This document shows, piece by piece, positions 35,763-46,954 of a stretch of 64,000 bases of DNA. The stretch spans positions 1-64,000 of the forward strand of contig RBZT01000234.1 in the NCBI GenBank assembly GCA_003693705.1, given 5' to 3'. Each line of letters begins with the position of its first letter. The first letter of the stretch is position 1. A model generated the notes under the pieces. It did not search any database. It was not told the DNA's origin and saw only the letters and a list, made by a program, of their open reading frames with translations. The stretch comes from Polymyxa betae A26-41. Taxonomy: Eukaryota > Protista > Endomyxa: Phytomyxea. The position numbers and the translations under genes are program-made.

Positions 35763-37145
35763 TTACTTCTTTTTTGCTCCCTTCCCAGATTTTGATTTTC
35801 CCGATTTTTTCTTCTTCTTTTGTGCAGCCCTTTCGGCTCGTTTCTGTTTGGCGTTTCGCCATGCTTTCTGGATGGTGGCAGCTGCGTCTTTGAGGCGTTG
35901 AACATCGGCATCCTTCTCCGCCTGGATCTTGGCGGCTGCAGCTTCTTGCGCTAGGCGTTCTTCTCGTTCCTGTTCCATTTTCCACCGAGCTTCTAGCTGA
36001 TCCAGCTGTTCTTTCGCCTCGGGATATTGTGTTTTTAGCTGCGACAGCTCTTCCTTTTTCTCTGCGAGCTCCTCTGCAAATTTCGCTTCCCATGATGCCA
36101 GTTTCTGTCATTTTCATGTCGTTTTCAGCTTTTGTAAGAACAGTCGATGAAGCCTACCGATCTGTTGGTTTCGATCTGTCGTTCCAGAAACTCTTTCGAC
36201 TTCCCCGAAACTTTCGCTTCTCGCTCGCTGTCGGCTTCGCATTGTGCAATTTCTAGCGACACTGTTTGTTAGTTGCTCTGAGGATCAATATCTAGACTAC
36301 CATGTCGTATGGCTTCGTGCTCGTTCAGGCGTAATCTTTGCACCGTATTAATCGAGGCTTTGGAGATATCGGTCTCTAATTTGGCCTGGACCGCAAGATC
36401 ATCGGTCGCTTTCTTCAGTTCGCCTGTCAGTTGTGTGATAGCATCATCGATGTCTGCGTTTCGTTCTGCGAATTGATCCTCGATTTGCTGAAGTTCTGTT
36501 TCTAAAGCCTGGCGCTGCGCTTCAGCTGCACTTTGTCTTTGCAGCGTCTCTTTCAGCTGGCGATCTTGGCTCAGGCACCGCCACACCTATATGGATCCTT
36601 AGCTGATGGTTCAGCACCCCCAAGACTGTCAACCTTCTCGGATAATGAGGTGAACGTTCGTTCGGGTTCTGACAAATCGAAGACGAGCTGCTTGAGTTGA
36701 TCGACCAGACTGGAACACTCGGTGGCGATCTCGCCCAATTTCCTGACATGTTCCGGGTCTTCGGCGCCCATGGCTTTTGCGATCGATCTGCGACAATAAC
36801 GCAGGTTTTCGACGGTTTCGGTCAGTTCGTGCTCCACATCCGTCGCGTTTCTTCTGGACAGCTCATCGGTCTTGGTTGACCTTTACGAATCGTCATCTGC
36901 CAAGATCTATATGGAACAAGCGAATACTTCGAGGTTTCACGGCTCTGTGCTAATTTGTGATATTGTTCCTGCATATCAGCTTGTGTATTCAGCAGGGACG
37001 TCATCGTGGCCCTTGCCGCCGCCGATCGTTTGCCGACCTGCTCCGATCGAACATGCTTCTGCAGGCATCGAAGCAGTTCGAGGCGTTGGATGGTCTCTTC
37101 AACGACAACCGAGAACCGCGCCGCATCGGTTTCAGACAATGACAT
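35763..37145 (-). CDS. DRC10: Dynein regulatory complex protein 10 (IQCD)
   Basis: N-terminus DAARFSVVVEETIQRLELL, long coiled coil, C-terminal IQ motif AAATIQKAWR and Lys-rich tail KKKKKSGKSKSGKGAKKK. Confidence 0.8.
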
Positions 37146-37247
37146 TGTCTGATAGAAACCCTAATTAGGGCCGAGTACTTGATACGATCTCGTAATAAAG
37201 CTGTGAATGGAACTTGTGAATGTATTATACTATGTCTATAGATTCAT

Positions 37248-40200
37248 CTAATAACGGGATTCCAGCCATTGTAGCAGATCTACATATCGGCCGCTTTGTC
37301 TCACTGCAACAAAATCAGTTGAGGAATTGGAATGATCATGGTCATGGGACGTACACATGAGTTTTCCCTGTATGATCTGGATATAGAGCCGATCTCGACC
37401 CAATCGATAAATAAAATCATCCTCTCTAGCGATAGGAATCGTGACATTCATCTGCTGGAATCTCTGCTTCAGATGTTCAATGGCTCGATCAACTGTCTCT
37501 GCATTCTGCAACAGCAATCAGCACCAAACCAACACTGAATCATGATCTCGTAATCCTACAGCTCGTGATGGCGTCTTCCTCTCACCCTTCTTCGATCTCC
37601 TCGGATTTCTCGCTTCGCCTTTTCTCGTTCCGGGAACATTCCACTCGATTGGCTCCGTCACGACGCCTTCCTTCACAGCCGTATCCGTAGCAGACGACAA
37701 TCGCCGAATGAGATCATCGGCGATGGATTTCGCTGTTAGCCTCCTCTGCCTTTCTAGCTGTAGCTCCATATCATTGGCCTCAGCCTCAGCACTGGCCGCA
37801 TGCAGAGCCATCGCTAAACTTTCCAGCTGAGCACTGAGTTTCATTTTTTCCTGCGGTGGCGGCGGCGTCTCTATCAGCTCCGGCACCGGCGCGGACGTCG
37901 TCATCTGCGCCAGCTGTTCCAAGGCTTCGTCGCGCTCCTTCTCCACCGTATACAGAGTCAACGTTGTCATGCGCAGCTTCTCTTTGAGTTTGTTCATCTC
38001 GGATTCCAGACGACGAATCTCGGCGCCGAGATCGGGCTCCGGACTGGCGAGGAGATCGTCCTCGGTTCCCGCCAGCACCTGTAACGCCAATGGAGCCGCC
38101 GCCGCCGCCACATCGCTTCCGCCCTCCATCTATTCGATCTCTAATTGCAGATCGTTCGTGGTACCATCACCAATAAACAAATCCGAGAGCGTCCTGATTT
38201 ATTGCGATTCCCGAACCGGCGCCATCATGTCGCTGTATTTCGGCCAGCACGACGGCGATGGCGGCGATGGCGACGGGCGCCAGACCAGGCCGCGGGAGCG
38301 CTCGGTCAGCTCGCGGCGCAGGCGGTCGGCGTTCAGCTCGAAAACTGTCAGGTTCTCCTTCTCCGGATTCAGGAGGTGACAGTCGTCGTCGTACTGGCCC
38401 TGGATATCCTCGAGGCAGCACTGTGTGCGGACGGGGTCACGGATACCGCTGTATCTCCATTGAAGCAGGGCTCTGTATAGGTGACGGTGTTGATGACGTC
38501 GCAGACAGGCCCGGAGTGCGGCCCGACCACGCACTCGCCGCAGCCAGACCTGGAACACGGCTCGCACGCGATTCGGGTCGGATCGGATCACGGCCGCTCT
38601 CATCATGAAATAATCGCGCCTAAAGCAGCGGGTGAGATTAAGACCATTATCTCCAGGGCGTGATTGCAACATACATTGTCGTGAGATCGCTCAGCGTCAC
38701 CTGTAACGAATTCGTTTCGGCGTGTAACGTATCCAACTGGGACCGGAGCTGTCCCACGACCAGATCATGTCGATCTTGGGCCTGATTCAGTTCGATCTGT
38801 TTCTCTTCATTATACACAGCCAGACGTGTTAATAATCGATTTCTATCGGCTTGTAATCGTCTCATATCTTCTTCAATCTTATGACGATATTCATCCAGTT
38901 CACGACATCGACCATGCGCAGCCACCAACCCCTCGTACTGATCCCGTAACGTATCCGACTCACAGCTGGCCGCCGCCAGACGTCGCCGTAGCACCAGGCA
39001 CGCCCATCGCAACAGGTCATTGCGCCGGGCCAATACGACCCCGGTCTGGTGCCAGAGGCGGATCAGGTGCACGGGGCGGATCGGCGCCGGTGTCTGTGGA
39101 GGCGGCAGCGCCCGCCACCGCTGTAACGCAAGACCCAGGTGCCAGCGGGCGGCGTCCCGCACCCGGACCAGTACGGCGCGTTTCAATCGCCGACAGCGGG
39201 ACGCGTCCGCGTGCCAGGCCGAGACGATGCGGGCCTGCAGGTGCCGGACGCGCTCCTGACGGAGTCCGAAGAGTGCGCCGAGGCGGCAGCTTTGGGCGCC
39301 GCGTCTCTGCCATCCTGTGTGCGTATGATCGGATCAGAGCGAGCCCGGACCCCGGATTGGACCAGTACGTACGGCGGAAGTAGATTGCGCAGCGCTGATG
39401 ACGGGAACGTGCCATGACGAGTCCGCTCAGGAGGAGGTAGTACGACTGAATGAGGCTGGAGCCCAGTGACCAGCGGCGTAGGGCGAAACGTTGCTGTTGG
39501 CGTCGGGCCAGGGCCAGTACGCGCCGGATCCGTTCCCGGCGCTGTCCGTATGCTGCATGTGTCAGACGCCAGGCCCGCCACTATGAAACATAATCAGATT
39601 AGATGGTGAATGAAAAAGCATTATGTAACACACCGCATCAGTGATGGTGATGTAACGTGAACATCGCCGAGCTGTACGATTACGGACTGTAGCGTGTTTC
39701 CATCCGCATAGAACTTGTCTCTAATGTGTAATATATCAGATATTATGCAGATAGGAGATCACGGACATTGAATGGACCTTGATAGATGTAGCTCTATGTT
39801 TATGTGATTCCTGAATATGAAATCGTTCTGTACAGCGATCGGACTTATATGAACGCCATGAATAGAATGTATCTGTTAATAGTTGTATGATATGATGTGA
39901 TTCATGAGTAAGTTCAATATTCAATTGCATCAGGGCAGTATGACGTCTATCAGCGGCAGTCCACTGAAATCGTCTGCCGACCAATCAGTACATGAACCGA
40001 TTTCTTTCAGACGATTTTCAATCACATGAATGCAGCTCGAAGACAGCGCCATCTCTGTATCTGATCGATTCTCTCAAACAGGCTCTGAAACCTCCGCAGC
40101 TGACTGCAATAACGACGCCACGATCGTATCGCCATCGTCACCGACCTCCTCTGAGCATCATTCAGGCACTCGCAGAAACCAATACAAATGTTGCTTCGAC

Positions 40201-43200
40201 CTGGATCGTGCATCTGCATCGTATGAAGGCGCTCTGCACTAAATGCGTCCATTGTATGAAGGATCTCCATCGACCAACTCCGTGGTGAAGTCCATTGTGT
40301 CGACCGATCATCAGACTGCGTCTGACGGCATCTCTACACCAAGCCACCCCACCATCAGTCATGACAATCACCCCACAACCCCATATTCGTTACCGTTTCA
40401 GGCGGTCACGCTGTACACGCGCCGTCCAGGTCCGCAGCGACCGCAGCAGGACGCGGGCACGGAGTTCCCCGCACAGACCACGGCGCACACGATTCCTCTC
40501 CGTGATGATCCGCAGCGCCAGCAGGCCGCGCTCATACCACGCCAATCGCTGCCGTAACTCTACCAAGGGACCCCGTCAGCATCGGGGGCCAGTACGGCCA
40601 TAGGCGATCGACCGAACCGGATCGGGCGGAAACGCGAGCGAGTGCCGCCTGATGGGAGCGTTGACGAGCGCTGTCCTGGGCGCAGTGCGAAGACCAATGA
40701 TGTAACGCGGATTGTAACGCCCTGATTCGTTACACAGTGTTAACGTGACACCCAATGTGGTCCGTGAGCCGTACCGGAGTCGGGAACTTTCAGCCAGAAG
40801 CCGGACCGTGACCTGTAACGCACGGGCACCCGCCGATCGCAACTGACGACATTGGCTGCGGTGTTGTTCGACCTGGCACACGCGAGCTATGTAACGTTGC
40901 CTGCGTTACAACACGCATTAACGGTTACATTGTGCAGCGGGGTGAGTCCGGTACGACCGGCTTACCATCGATCGAACGCCGATCCAACTCGGGAGCGTCG
41001 AGCGATCCTCGACATAGTCTGCAAAATGTAACGTCGCCGACGACGTCGCCCGACGTAACGTCTCCATTCCTGAAACGTAAACGGCAATCATCAGTCAAAG
41101 TGACAGCAGCCTCACAAGAGGTTGTTTTACAAGAAACGCGTAACGTGACTTGACGTGTTCACAGACACGCCGGACGATTGTAACGTGATTCTGTACTTGA
41201 CGGTGATCGGACACGTAACTCTGCCAGTCATGCCACGCATGTCGGACGCGGCTCCGGACCCAGACCTTCACACATCGCGACAGACTGCGCAGTCTAGCAA
41301 CCCGGTGGGCGTACTGCCCCAGCCAGCACTGCAGCACGCGATACTTGATGTTACGAATACCACGACGTGATATTTGCTGGGCGGTGATATCGGCCTCTTT
41401 ATCGAGCTATAGCGTATGGTAAGTGATGGAAACCCTAAACCCTAAGGGTTTTACGTACATGCGCCTGACGGTTCCATTTCCTTAAAGTATGCAGTGCGTG
41501 ACGTCGCAGATGATGGCGAGAGACCCGGAATATCAAGCTGCGAATCATTGCGGTCTGGTAACGTCTGCTGCACCATCGCTGCAGCCAGCGCCGTTTCGCA
41601 GATAGCCGATGCGTGCGCGCTTGTTGTCGGTGTAGCTTGGCAGTCCGCCAACGCGACCAACTGGACATTACACGGCGCAAACGGATCCGGGTATCGAAAT
41701 GTGCCAGTGCCTGTGCAATAACGTTACAATGCTCAAGTCACGATAACGTTTCGCCAACTGCGAACCAGGGTCTGATAACGTAACCGGCGGTCCTCATCGA
41801 CGTAGCGTTGCCACAGATGTAACGCGATCGCTATGGCGCGTTGACGCTTGCGACGGACTGCACGACGGATCAGACGGAGACGTCGCGCTGAGCGTTGCCA
41901 CGTTCGCAAAGTCCGCGATACGAAACGACCTTGGTAACGAGAATCCAGGACAGCATCATGATGCCGTTCACTGTCACATTTCTGCCTGGTTCACAGTCAG
42001 TAAACCCTAACCCTAGAGCCCTAAGACCCTAATCCTACTTCCATTTCTGGAATGCCATACAGACACTGTATGTGTTCATCTTGGTCATACAGCGGCATAA
42101 TGCGCGACGGACATGTTGTCTGTCACGGACTCCGTCACGCCATTTTTGCAGCACACGTTTACGTAACAGGTACCGCACGCTACACAGCAATCAGCTCGGG
42201 CATCTTCACATATTGGTAACATTAACAGACCGTTCACGATACAGCTGCTGATGTTTCCGTCTTTGCACATATCGTCTCCAGGCCGATATCGTTCGCATAC
42301 AGATACGCAGGTCGTACACGCCCTGGGCCTTCTTCTCACCCAGTTCCTGCGCAACCACACACCTCAGCCTCTCTGTATTATTATTGCTACCACGGATCAG
42401 TATGACCTGGGTCATATCGAGCAGTTTGTTCTTGAGATAGGCGACGTACCAGCCCCGTACACAGTGACGCAGCCTGCGATGTCGTTGAAGTAGCGTTGAC
42501 CGCACCATACTACAGCGACTGTCAGAGAGGGCGGACTCCGTGACGGAGATGATGGATGGATCCCACCTTGTTCTGGTATGTTTCTGGATTCTGATGAATG
42601 ATCTCCAGCGGAGGAACGTGGATACTAAGGCCCGTAGACAGTATGCGGCCTGTGTCTGTAGTAGCCGAGGTAACATAAGATCCATGAATGACTCGATTGT
42701 TCGAGGTGGATTCTGTATCGGTACTGAATAGAGCAACGTGTTAAGTATGATCTGTAGAACTGCAGATATACGTTACCATTGGTGTATACGATACCGGACA
42801 TGGGACTGCGAGCTAATGATACGTTCTTCGATGCACAGGCCCGCTCAAGAAGCGGGATCGGAATCGTGATGGAAGATCGCGTGTTTTGATACCATGTACG
42901 TAACGTTTTCGATAACTGGACAGACTCAACATCAATCATCATGTGCTGTAACGTTAAAAACACGGAACGCAACGTAAAGCACCCGATCAAAAGCCCAGCC
43001 TCAATCAAACGCCATCGTTACCTGGCAATGAGTGATGCGTTTCACAAGATGGTGCAGTTGGAGACGACGGCGGTAACCCCACCTCCATCTGAACCAGTAA
43101 CGAAGCAGCCATCGTCTCTGTAACATCACTTCCTCGATCTGATCGATTTTATTCTGTAACCGATCCTGTCTCAATTGACGCCATTGAAAGGCCCATCGTC

Positions 43201-46200
43201 GCAGCCAGCGTCGTCGTCGTTCACGCTCAATATCATCGCGCTTCACACGACGACAACGCGCATATTGTTTCTGCATTTCCACTGAGATTGGGGGAGCGGG
43301 GTTGGCGGGGGCCGGTATTACCCAGCATCGGAAGGCGATCTGGGCGCGGTTCTGGAGACAATGCGATCGCAGACGTTGGAAAACGTTGGAGCGGCGGATG
43401 GCTGAACGCCATATTGTGAAGCCATCGCGAACCTGATCGAAATTGAACAACGCTTTCAACAATGTGAGAAACAATTTGTTTAAAAAAAAATACAAAAAGA
43501 CAGAAAAAATTCCATGAAAATGTGGACGACTTTGCCGTAGACCAGAATTCGGACCGCGTGATCCGCAAGGTAACGGAAGCGGTGGCCTTTCACAAGTGCG
43601 CGGCGCCACATGCACCAGCTGTAACGAATATACGATCTGCCAAATGGGTCGAATCACGTTTCATATCGTTGATCGGGTATCGTACCGGGTCCGTTTCCAG
43701 TTGGTGATGGCGTGTAACAGAGATGTAGCGTTAGACTCGTTATGATACAAGTTCCGATGCAGTAACGAGAGCCAGGCACGTAAACACCTAAGTCACTGTC
43801 AACTCCGTCCGTGATAACTGGAACCGAAAACCCTAGATAGCCGTAGGAGACAAATCCGGTGCAAACCAGGGTAACGTGTGCACATACTGTCTCTGGCGGT
43901 TATTTACGATACGTTCAGGGACGTAACGTATGCGAGTACGATGAGCCGCGTAGTTCCGCCACCAGTGTATAGCGTTACCAAGAGCCACATAGCGTGATCG
44001 CCGTGCGACAGCATTGGCGCAGATCTGATTGGTGGCGGACGTGCGTGTAACGAGATGCCACTGGCGCCAAGCGTAACGTAACTGACTGCGCAGGAACCGA
44101 CTCACAGTCCGTGAGGCCAATTCACGCTGACGACGCCGTCGTAACGTGATATGCAGCCAACGATACAGCAGCTGCTGTTTGCGATGATGTCGACGTTGCG
44201 CCTGAAACGTTACGGCGACTTGAACAGGGAGTGGCGATACGGCCTGCCAACGTAACATAACGATACGTAAGAGACGCGCTTGAACAGTCTGTCCGATTCG
44301 AGCGATGGAACGGGCCGCGTTGTGTTGCGCTGTAGCGATCCGGCGCCAGTGCCGTAACGTAGAATGTAACGCCATGCGCACATAGCGTTGTAACAGCCGC
44401 TGACAGAGCGGTCCACGTCGAACATGATGACGCCACTGTCTCCATACGTTACAGACATTGCGCTGTTGGTCATGTAACATAACCGCGTGCACCTTCCAGA
44501 TACCCATCTGTAACATAATCAGCACGATTCCAAACGTCTCACGGTAACGTAAGCAGGTCAATCGGAACGTCAAATATGCCAACAGACGATTTCATCCAGC
44601 GTCGATGATGGTCACGAAAAAACGAAAACCAGAAACGTTAGCACAGGGACTCACCTGAAGTCTGCGGTGTTGTATCTGTTTCGTTACAGCTGCATATGCA
44701 GTCCAGTGCCTCCATGCATTGCGGACCCTATCTGCCTGAGCTCGACACTAACGTAAACATAGGGGCAGGAGGTTAGTACCGAGCCGAGGTTAAAGAGTGA
44801 CCTACCAGTGCCGCAACCAAACGCTTAGTACAGGCAACACGTTTCTCACGTAACGTGGCCCACTGCTGTAACATTCGTTCCCGGAGACGGGTCGACGAGC
44901 TGAAATTCAGGGCGATCTCGGTAGCGCGACGAGCTTGCGTCTGTATACCGACATGAGTAACGTTATAATAATGGCTTGGTTGTAACGTTACATTGGACTG
45001 GAGTTGAGCCCAGACATATTTCAGTCTTTCCAGTCGGACATGTAACAGCCGATAACAGATCAGCTGACGAGCTCGATGTCGGGCTGCAGTCCAGCGGCTC
45101 CCTGCGGACGTAACATCAAGGTTACGTTACGTGCAACATTACGGCCACGTTACAGGCATGGAATGCGGACACTACTGTACGCTGCCTCCATCGCACGATA
45201 ATCTCACGGCGACGCTGACGCAATCGCCGGATACACGTTACCCATTTCTTGAGTAACAGAATCCCAGACCGGCGTGCGCACCGTCGATCGATGCGACCTG
45301 CGTCATGGTGGTCAGGCTGGCCCCTATAGCGCGGGTAACGTGAATGCGGCCTGATATGTACCTAGTATCGTGTGCAGAGTCGATTTGCGCTGTCGGCTGC
45401 TCTGGACGTATTGGCGCCATCGCTGGAAACATGATCGTCGCGAATGTAACGTATTGGAGCATAACGACATCCATCGGGACAGTACAGCTATATGGGACAA
45501 TCAGTTCCACAGCAATGACTGCAACGTAAGTGATTGAAATTCGGAACGGAAAGATCCAACAATAGGCCAGGTAGCAAAACTATGATATTATGTTTCAACT
45601 GGAATAAACGTTACCGTGAATGAGATTTGGTGGTCTTTGTCCACGTCTCCATAAACGTAACGTGTGTCTTATAGTGAATGTGATCATGATATGACCGACC
45701 CGATTCCATAATCTTCTCATATAGATAGATCTCCTCATACTTAATAGACAGGATCGTAAAATCCGTCTCCGTCCATGATGTTCACTGCGTTCTTCACATC
45801 GCTGCTCGCTGCATTGGACAGCACGCCAATGCGACAGAGCGGCACGCATTCGGACGTAAATGTCACGGCGCAGGATACGTCGAAGTAGGTGGCGCCGATC
45901 TCGATGTAGTTGCCTCCATGCTTGTAATGCCAATCGCTGCCTGTATCGGCGTCGTAATCTGGCAGCCAGATACTCCGCCCCTATTCATGTTAGGGTTTTG
46001 AGGGTTTAGGGTTTAGGGTTTCTCACCTCGATATGCTAGGCCACCGAGCCGCCATTTTCGCCATGCTATCCTAAGACGAACAGTACAACCGAGCTGGATT
46101 GATCGTTGTACGGCCTCCGTGCATTGTCGCCGTCGTACTAGCCGCTGATGCCAACGCAGGAACGTTGCACAGCCCAGCTGCTGGCGATGACGACGCAGCG

Positions 46201-46954
46201 ATTCGGTCTGACGGCGAACGCAGCCGACGCTGTACGCCAGCCATTGCCGAATCGCCGACCGCGATCGGTGCAGTACGACTCGGCGTAGACGTACCAGCCC
46301 GGCCCTGGTCCGCAGCCTGGATCTGAACACCGAACGCCACCCCGAGAGAGCCCGCTGACGGCGGCGGCGATCAACCAGCTGGAAAACGGCGTGCTCAAGA
46401 TGCTGACCGTACTGCCCCTGCTCCTGACGAACATATCGCCGCCACTGCTGCAGGTAACAGCGCTCCGTGCTAATGGTCGACGTGTGCTGCAACAGAGCAT
46501 GACGCCGTACTGTCCCGAATGCTTGGCGCAGGGCAGCGGCCCGCGTAATGCGGACAGCGCGCTGCAGCCGCCTCCGCAACAGACGACGTTGCGTGGTCTG
46601 CAACCGCCATGTTTGGACGGTACGACTCAATCGGACCCGGCGGCATTGCTGACGGAATCGGCGCGTTTCTCGCCGGCGGTCCTGACAAGCGCGCCATGCG
46701 TGGAACGCTCGTCGCCGCCTCTGTTGCTGCCGATGTCGAGCGACGAAATCGCCGGCGAACGCATCGGCGTCATCCTGGTTGAGGAAGACGGCTCGTGCAG
46801 CGGCCATGATGATGGGTGATAGAAGCCCCCGATGCAGAGCTGACGCTAATGCAGCCTGTGCAGCATACCATCGGTCCAGATGAGATGCTTGATGTAACAG
46901 ATTGTGTCGCAGAACGGCCACCAGATTGGCATCGGAGTCGCCAGCTGGGGCCAT
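37248..46954 (-). CDS. Giant Sfi1-repeat (centrin-binding-like) protein with coiled coil and C-terminal GAS2/GAR-like domain; many exons
   Basis: Dozens of Arg-rich repeats ending in (F/L/W)xxW(R/K/H), e.g. RRAFHAWRA, SRTVQTWRL, CYLQQWRRY, STFLRWRSF, RYAWRQWHL, LALQRWRAL. Coiled coil near 38700-38950 and 37700-38030. Terminal IAREDDFIYRLGRDRLYIQIIQGKLM-VRQSGRYVDLLQWL resembles GAS2. Single-gene continuity checked only at some junctions. Confidence 0.7.
41407..41458 (-). repeat. Intron containing telomere-type repeats in both orientations
   Basis: Minus strand: GTACGTAAAACCCTTAGGGTTTAGGGTTTCC...CTATAG. Confidence 0.7.
41986..42038 (-). repeat. Intron largely made of degenerate TTAGGG repeats
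   Basis: Minus strand: GTAGGATTAGGGTCTTAGGGCTCTAGGGTTAGGGTTTACTGAC...CCAG. Confidence 0.75.
45981..46026 (-). repeat. 46-nt intron made almost entirely of (AAACCCT)n
   Basis: Minus strand: GTGAGAAACCCTAAACCCTAAACCCTCAAAACCCTAACATGAATAG. Confidence 0.8.

Follow-up and report, generated by a model that had tools for sequence, protein, structure and literature searches.

A putative giant Sfi1-type repeat gene beside a GAR-like coiled-coil module in the plasmodiophorid Polymyxa betae

A minus-strand coding region of about 9.7 kb

The stretch of DNA analyzed here (the window) comprises 64,000 nucleotides of the Polymyxa betae A26-41 genome (assembly GCA_003693705.1, contig RBZT01000234.1, positions 1 to 64,000), and its minus strand carries an intron-rich coding region that runs from an ATG at 46954 to a TAG at 37250-37248. 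As it stands, this region holds a new and very divergent Sfi1-repeat protein beside a small GAR protein resembling SNAP1 of Trypanosoma brucei. The initial annotation had read the whole ~9.7 kb as one gene for a protein of 2,500 to 2,900 aa that combines Sfi1 repeats, a coiled coil, and a GAS2-like end. Intron-rich minus-strand coding from ATG 46954 to TAG 37248 was borne out, but not as a single reading unit, since an in-frame TAA (38201-38199) and TAG (38132-38130) intervene; likewise, the predicted length depends on the splicing of an 87-nt intron at 38216-38130 that is unverified and would give 2,619 aa; otherwise the products measure 2,366 and 258 aa.

Three-frame translation of the minus strand gives a run of short Arg/Trp-rich open segments from 47086 to ~38200, downstream of which lie two further open segments of other composition. 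Two draft gene models were built by a splice-aware procedure allowing GT-AG introns of 40 to 220 nt, the first scored on length and the second on codon composition. In both, ATG 46954 serves as the start; no ATG precedes it in the first open segment, and the sequence upstream is AT rich. The models place ~26 exons down to 38217, separated by introns of 46 to 127 nt (median, 58 nt). The exon boundaries are computational, and several within 45600-43400 disagree between the two models; database queries were single exons, and joined models served only for motif and length counts. At the 3' side, a good 55-nt intron (38674-38620, GTATGT...TTTAG) joins the exon at 38619-38217 to the one upstream. 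The features of the repeat gene are as follows.

38199-46954, minus strand: Sfi1-type repeat gene, from ATG 46954 through ~26 exons to the in-frame TAA 38201-38199; draft product of 2,366 aa, 287 kDa, pI 11.9 (splice-aware models).
38430-46762, minus strand: degenerate 30/33-residue Arg/Trp repeat array with the motif [L/V]xx[A/T/V][L/F/W]xxW[R]; 35 repeats lie wholly within single exons, and there are ~55-69 Trp anchors in total, so that the full number of repeats may be nearer 60.
38675-38965, minus strand: first coiled-coil segment, draft residues ~2132-2227, at the end of exon 39314-38675; weak matches to coiled-coil families (KIF21A-like, ERM_helical).
38217-38619, minus strand: last exon of the repeat gene, carrying 2 further Trp repeats, a short coiled coil, and a tail rich in Pro and Ser; repeat-profile matches at 38436-38612.

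Arg/Trp repeats of Sfi1 type

The 26 exon translations together comprise 2,284 aa, with 85 Trp (~4%) and 19.7% Arg; the protein is very basic, and both proline (1.4%) and glycine are scarce. Counted within single exons, Trp-Trp distances of 29 to 34 residues occur 30 times, against 10.2 in shuffled sequences (maximum, 19), which confirms the very long Arg/Trp repeat array that had been reported from the sequence. In the draft joined model, Trp lags of 33 and 30 residues recur 21 and 15 times, respectively (expectation, 3.4), a regular spacing that falls inside the Sfi1 range of 23-36. An alignment anchored on Trp is enriched for L/F/W at position -3 (1.75 bits), A/T/V at -4, L/V at -7, and Arg at +1, and positions upstream of -8 are barely conserved. 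Structures of Sfi1 with centrin have shown that a reversed W-L-L hydrophobic triad forms the Sfi1-type centrin sites, and the enrichment at 0, -3, and -7 matches this triad at the level of sequence.

Sfi1 repeats were defined by the consensus AX7LLX3F/LX2WK/R at a spacing of 23-36, with 33-mers in human SFI1, a low proline content, and two ScanProsite criteria (Kilmartin 2003, PMC2173958). One of these, the paired pattern [FWL]x2W[KRH]x21-34[FWL]x2W[KRH], of which at least two occurrences are called for, was found 9 times in the repeat protein against a shuffle mean of 0.08 (maximum, 2). The other, A-x12-[FL]x2W[KRH], for which at least three are needed, was found once in the draft repeat protein, and the strict consensus A-x7-LL-x3-[F/L]-x2-W-[K/R] had 0 matches in the draft repeat region, as in the shuffles, which also gave ~0. 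The assignment to Sfi1 repeats thus stood as regards motif and periodicity, but not as regards the strict consensus, the Pfam profile PF08457, or any relative in sequence.

A single-sequence AlphaFold2 (AF2) model of a 220-aa exon consists of helices of 38, 58, and 48 residues, albeit at low confidence (predicted local distance difference test [pLDDT] score of 60). In a comparison of ESM language-model features, the cluster nearest to exon 1 (score, 0.90) contains 12% PF08457 members, and a cluster of 97% Sfi1 proteins is also among the 30 nearest.

Homology searches supply points against an Sfi1 assignment. The profile PF08457 (Sfi1), which the initial annotation had proposed as a check, gave no match at E≤10 on any of the 26 single-exon translations or on 10 pieces of open reading frames (ORFs), and an exhaustive search with exon 1 against 1.84 billion representatives returned zero matches. 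Word searches with exon 1 and with the piece at 38202-38690 recovered no relative, PDB sequence searches gave no matches, and neither two scans of metagenomes nor one of prokaryote genomes recovered a related locus. Scans of all six reading frames of the genome for PF08457 and PF02187 (GAS2) were silent, but the controls were equally so, which makes these scans uninformative. The P. betae draft genome consists of 1,001 contigs and 27,085,946 bp, and its announcement mentions no annotation (PMC6328671); our searches of it covered 27,085,814 bases on 1,001 contigs and, with exon 1, the 220-aa exon, the GAR piece described below, and the repeat profile as queries, gave matches at this locus only. 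We do not claim the repeat gene as the sole gene of its kind in the genome or as an orthologue of SFI1.

These results bear on the alternative that the repeats are not centrin-binding Sfi1 repeats and that the resemblance is convergent, the protein being instead either built of another helical repeat, for example, a TPR/HAT-like solenoid or a calmodulin-binding array of IQ type, or a basic filament protein that evolves rapidly. The empty strict consensus and lone A-x12 match, the lack of a PF08457 match or of a relative for exon 1, and the scarcely conserved positions upstream of -8 speak for such a reading, but a period of 30/33 residues, a core of [FLW]xxW[KR], and an enriched position -7 are in line with Sfi1. 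Helices predicted to exceed one repeat, together with the scarcity of Pro and Gly, argue against helix-turn-helix units of 34 residues, and on these grounds a TPR/HAT-like solenoid was rejected. As to an IQ-like array, Pfam returned one marginal IQ match among the exon translations (E value of 4.6). Accepted Sfi1-like proteins of protists have themselves been named from the motif without sequence homology (PMC10180636; bioRxiv 10.1101/2022.01.06.475287); those of Stentor and Plasmodium are defined by motif counts, and members of this family commonly lack sequence homology. On balance, it seems unlikely to us that the repeats are not centrin-binding Sfi1 repeats, and we retain the Sfi1-type reading for what follows.

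The coiled-coil and GAR-like module and its junction with the repeat gene

The two open segments downstream of ~38200 form a small module, separated from the last repeat exon by 87 nt that can be read in two ways. Its only detectable relative is a 204-aa protein, P0001, encoded on a 3,671-nt Logan contig of ERR10755939.

38130-38216, minus strand: ambiguous 87 nt, either an intron with phase 0 on each side (GTTCGG...AATAG) that contains TAA 38201-38199 or the last 5 codons and stop of the repeat gene followed by a 69-nt spacer (38198-38130).
37560-38129, minus strand: coiled-coil exon and ORF, 190 aa, acidic; ATG 38129 directly follows TAG 38132-38130; coiled-coil family matches; 53% identical to P0001.
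37506-37559, minus strand: 54-nt intron GTAGGA...TTGCAG, its position kept in P0001.
37355-37505, minus strand: first exon of the GAR-like domain, 50 aa (151 nt), helix 1 and strands 1-4 (sequence, AF2 model, structure searches).
37304-37354, minus strand: 51-nt intron GTACGT...CTGAT...TTGCAG, in frame and stop free; when translated, it forms a disordered loop in the AF2 model (pLDDT <50, residues 58-69 of an 89-aa piece).
37248-37303, minus strand: last exon of the GAR-like domain, 18 aa (56 nt), strand 5 and helix 2, with stop TAG 37250-37248 (sequence, AF2 model).

Read from ATG 38129, the module has 258 aa, and its last two exons, when spliced, encode a 68-residue domain. The coiled coil that had been placed after the repeats was corroborated by weak matches to coiled-coil families. 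The C-terminal peptide quoted from the sequence is indeed encoded at 37505-37355 and 37303-37251, but the splice junction reads GKLM/LRQSGRY and not GKLM-VRQ. Retention of the 51-nt intron would add 17 His/Ser/Asp-rich residues to the loop before the last strands and leave the frame intact.

The AF2 model of the 89-aa piece, in which this intron is read through, shows a helix, four strands, the disordered intron-coded loop, two strands, and a helix (pLDDT, 58.5). Searched with Foldseek against 350,542 PDB chains, it recovered the GAR domain of ACF7, the GAS2 GAR domain on microtubules, the EF-GAR region of ACF7, and a Gas2 domain at ranks 1, 2, 4, and 5, with all GAR matches at E>0.1 and a top probability of 0.85. 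VIA alignments to GAR chains gave Z values of 6.5 (root mean square deviation [rmsd] 3.6, 72 aligned), 6.4 (rmsd 2.8, 68 aligned), 5.4, and 5.4. A VIA search of 48,161 chains made independently of Foldseek also placed the ACF7 GAR domain first, followed by frataxin (5.7), a Mediator chain (5.6), and then two GAS2 chains (5.4); the GAR Z values are thus middling, with frataxin at 5.7-5.8 in the VIA comparison. In a shape search of the ESM Atlas, rows 1 and 2 are clusters with 95% and 100% PF02187 members.

Agreement among the three structure libraries, together with a YRxG...R..G.aromatic..L..WL pattern, makes it likely that the C-terminal 68 residues adopt a GAR/GAS2-like fold, in keeping with the GAS2-like end proposed from the sequence. 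The PF02187 profile, again suggested as a check, gave no match at E≤10 on either the 50-aa exon or the 89-aa intron-retaining piece, and both AF2 models, of the GAR piece and of the 220-aa repeat exon, are of low confidence (pLDDT, 58-60); these points count against our assignment. PDB sequence searches and ESM features likewise gave no match for this domain. Canonical GAR domains bind zinc through Cys-Cys-Asp-Cys, located in the loop between helix 1 and strand 1 and in a C-terminal loop (PMC10656233, PMC12084551). The spliced 68-aa domain contains zero cysteines and ends right after helix 2, so the canonical site cannot exist here.

In a manual alignment of LMLRQSGRY with VMVRVGGGW, which we take to be the corresponding string of GAS2, the R252-like Arg is kept, W257 is replaced by Tyr, and one of the three hairpin glycines is present. 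In GAS2, R252, G254-G256, and W257 are the residues in contact with microtubules (PMC12084551). With no PF02187 match and no zinc ligands, the Polymyxa domain cannot be assumed to bind microtubules, which the similarly degenerate GAR domain protein SNAP1 does not do, and such binding is doubtful.

The relative P0001 bears on the boundary of the module. It begins with Met five residues ahead of a conserved ALQVLAG block, and its similarity to the coiled-coil exon extends to the residues RA that immediately precede the GT donor. On its contig, it is preceded by seven short ORFs of the same strand, suggesting that its source is probably another plasmodiophorid, and it follows the preceding ORF by ~250 nt, longer than any intron predicted at the P. 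betae locus.

With two in-frame stops in the junction, we see an even chance that the locus comprises two adjacent same-strand genes, one for the 2,366-aa repeat protein (46954-38199) and one for the 258-aa module (38129-37248), which would then have separate transcripts. The rival reading is a single gene in which splicing of the 87-nt intron 38216-38130 removes the TAA and yields a 2,619-aa cytolinker, with a centrin-binding Sfi1-type rod and a C-terminal GAR-like head, analogous in layout to spectraplakins, giant rods that end in a GAR domain. Several observations weigh against two genes and for this rival. Both ORFs are in one frame, and a phase-0 GT at 38216 and an AG just before the ATG delimit a clean intron, which the length-scored model picked unprompted; a GTTCG donor, an ATAG acceptor, and lengths of 76-127 nt recur in the other predicted introns of this gene. 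A spacer of 69 nt would leave extremely little room for both a terminator and a promoter, and a short noncoding gap within an intron-dense gene is much likelier to be an intron than a spacer. The same-strand neighborhood is kept in the relative, where exon-like ORFs precede the module, and the Met of P0001 may be an artifact of gene calling. The GC content of the gap (0.44) is intron-like compared to 0.70 in the preceding tail.

A single gene, however, would need its downstream exon to open exactly at ATG 38129, immediately after the in-frame TAG 38132-38130, and P0001 is likewise Met initiated after its ~250-nt gap. At +3 the candidate intron carries T; neither a branch point nor a pyrimidine tract is clear in it, and its 3' end is rich in purines. 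An AATAAA overlaps TAA 38201-38199, and the next ORF only ~102 nt beyond TAG 37248 provides a precedent for a short spacer. The stretch just after ATG 38129 is GC rich and coding-like, which we count in favor of two units, and the genomes of plasmodiophorids (Plasmodiophora) are noted for shortened intergenic regions and overlapping untranslated regions (PMC4815078). The coincidences that each reading demands roughly cancel: the fusion needs an exon whose first codon is Met, and two genes need a splice-compatible GT, AG, and common frame by chance. We hold the single gene to be possible at somewhat less than an even chance and keep two adjacent genes as the working description. The fusion of Sfi1 and GAS2 elements in one protein, the central claim of the initial annotation, was not demonstrated: an ATG of the module's own follows the stops directly, and the 87-nt intron is plausible but unverified.

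Three further possibilities were set aside. An acceptor at 38079 (TTACAG) is less likely given the conserved ALQ and the GC-rich, coding-like stretch upstream of 38079. Double stop-codon readthrough was rejected, as there are two in-frame stops 22 codons apart. A promoter motif AATTAG common to the two short spacers was dropped; it is not enriched, and its downstream copy lies within a telomere-like box.

The repeat gene also has an unusual nucleotide composition. Within it, the pentamers GTAAC/GTTAC reach a density of 9.1 per kb, versus 0.95 in the rest of the window and 0.73 in 38619-37248; they cluster in the central 5 kb (40500-45500), in exons and introns alike, and since this enrichment fades before either gene end, it is no marker of a gene boundary. 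CGTTAC is the top hexamer on the coding strand, with 36 copies, and many splice donors of the repeat gene read GTAACG and many acceptors ACGTTACAG. Three introns (46026-45981, 42038-41986, and 41458-41407) consist mostly of telomere-type CCCTAA/TTAGGG, with 2-3 hexamers each, and Tandem Repeats Finder reported a TTAGGGT array at 45990-46021. No tandem repeat of protein-repeat size is present at the DNA level in the repeat gene, Rfam gave no match at the feature, and plus-strand ORFs overlying it had no family match.

The next ORF downstream, with its ATG at 37145, lies ~102 nt after TAG 37248 on the same strand, as had been proposed for a neighboring flagellar gene, DRC10. Its position was confirmed, but its identity as DRC10 (or DRC9) was not: Pfam and PDB sequence searches with three exon pieces gave nothing significant, the best match being DUF4200 at an E value of 0.33. 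A palindromic telomere-like box, CCCTAATTAGGGTTT, stands at 37156-37170, just upstream of ATG 37145.

Possible function and comparison with known systems

If the repeats act as their Sfi1-type signature suggests, each would bind one centrin, and the resulting centrin-decorated long helix could form a calcium-responsive fiber at basal bodies or centrioles, by analogy with Sfi1 and with its relatives in ciliates and apicomplexans. The GAR-like module may dimerize via its coiled coil and anchor to root microtubules or a partner protein, functioning as a protein-protein or weak microtubule adaptor. Both units would then belong to the flagellar or centriolar cytoskeleton, and with their genomic linkage kept in the relative, they may work together. 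The flagellar root, the cruciform mitotic apparatus, and the Rohr/Stachel penetration device, all named in the initial annotation as sites of action, are speculation. Should the 87-nt gap be an intron, the product might be a 2,619-aa spectraplakin-like cytolinker tying a calcium-sensitive centrin fiber to a partner protein or to microtubules of the flagellar root or the spindle, a scenario we hold more tentatively still than the single gene itself.

Plasmodiophorids transmit viruses and parasitize the roots of crop plants, in the case of P. betae sugar beet, and they cannot be cultivated. Hardly anything has been described at the molecular level for the flagellar apparatus of plasmodiophorid zoospores or for the cruciform mitosis and the penetration organelles of the group. 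The giant scaffold of Sfi1 type and the SNAP1-like GAR protein encoded beside it provide two concrete candidates, for a centrin fiber system and for its anchoring. As two genes, they would amount to an unexceptional, if highly divergent, member of the widespread family of Sfi1-repeat proteins beside a small cytoskeletal gene; as one polypeptide, if true, they would represent a new way of coupling centrin filaments to microtubules. The literature searched describes no Sfi1-GAS2 architecture and contains no paper on Sfi1 in plasmodiophorids, and in Stentor the Sfi1 and GAS2 families are separate proteins.

Like yeast Sfi1p and human SFI1 (PMC2173958), the Polymyxa repeat protein consists of tandem helical repeats with a central Trp, F/L at -3, and K/R after it, is proline poor, and shows no conservation outside the repeats. 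It differs from them in that its repeats are 2-3 times more numerous, the alanine and LL positions are degenerate, Arg reaches 20%, no exon matches PF08457, and an Sfi1_C domain is lacking. With the giant scaffolds of ciliates (Paramecium PtCenBP1, Spirostomum GSBPs, and the Stentor Sfi1 family) it shares a length of >2,000 aa and dozens of W[KR]-ending repeats identified by motif (PMC9946354, bioRxiv 10.1101/2025.08.11.669701). In contrast, its spacing is 30/33 whereas Stentor gaps are ~46 residues, no sequence similarity was detected, and its lineage, the Rhizaria, has no known myoneme-type contractile cortex. A closer parallel in kind is PfSlp of Plasmodium, likewise a large protist protein that is Sfi1-like solely by accumulated centrin-binding motifs (PMC10180636). 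PfSlp has been shown experimentally to interact with centrin at the microtubule-organizing center (PMC10180636), whereas centrin binding by the Polymyxa repeats is what their motif would predict.

The module in turn resembles the GAR/GAS2 domains of ACF7/MACF1 and GAS2 (PDB 5x57, 5ve9, 1v5r, 9kbw; PMC12084551) in its ~70 residues and its order of helix, 5-6 strands, and helix. By manual alignment, it also keeps the YRxG...R...aromatic...L..[FW]L pattern, with the R252-like Arg and an aromatic residue at the W257-like position. It departs from the canonical domain in having no PF02187 match, none of the four zinc ligands, one of three hairpin glycines, and no CH or EF-hand partner domains. A comparable departure has been described in Trypanosoma brucei, whose SNAP1, a flagellar-root (microtubule quartet) protein beside the basal body and centrin arm, carries a degenerate form of the GAR domain and fails to bind microtubules (PMC10656233). 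Judging from that description, the two share a domain layout of coiled coils followed by a C-terminal GAR-like domain without most of the zinc and microtubule-binding residues, and by this analogy SNAP1 is the closest described counterpart of the Polymyxa GAR-like module.

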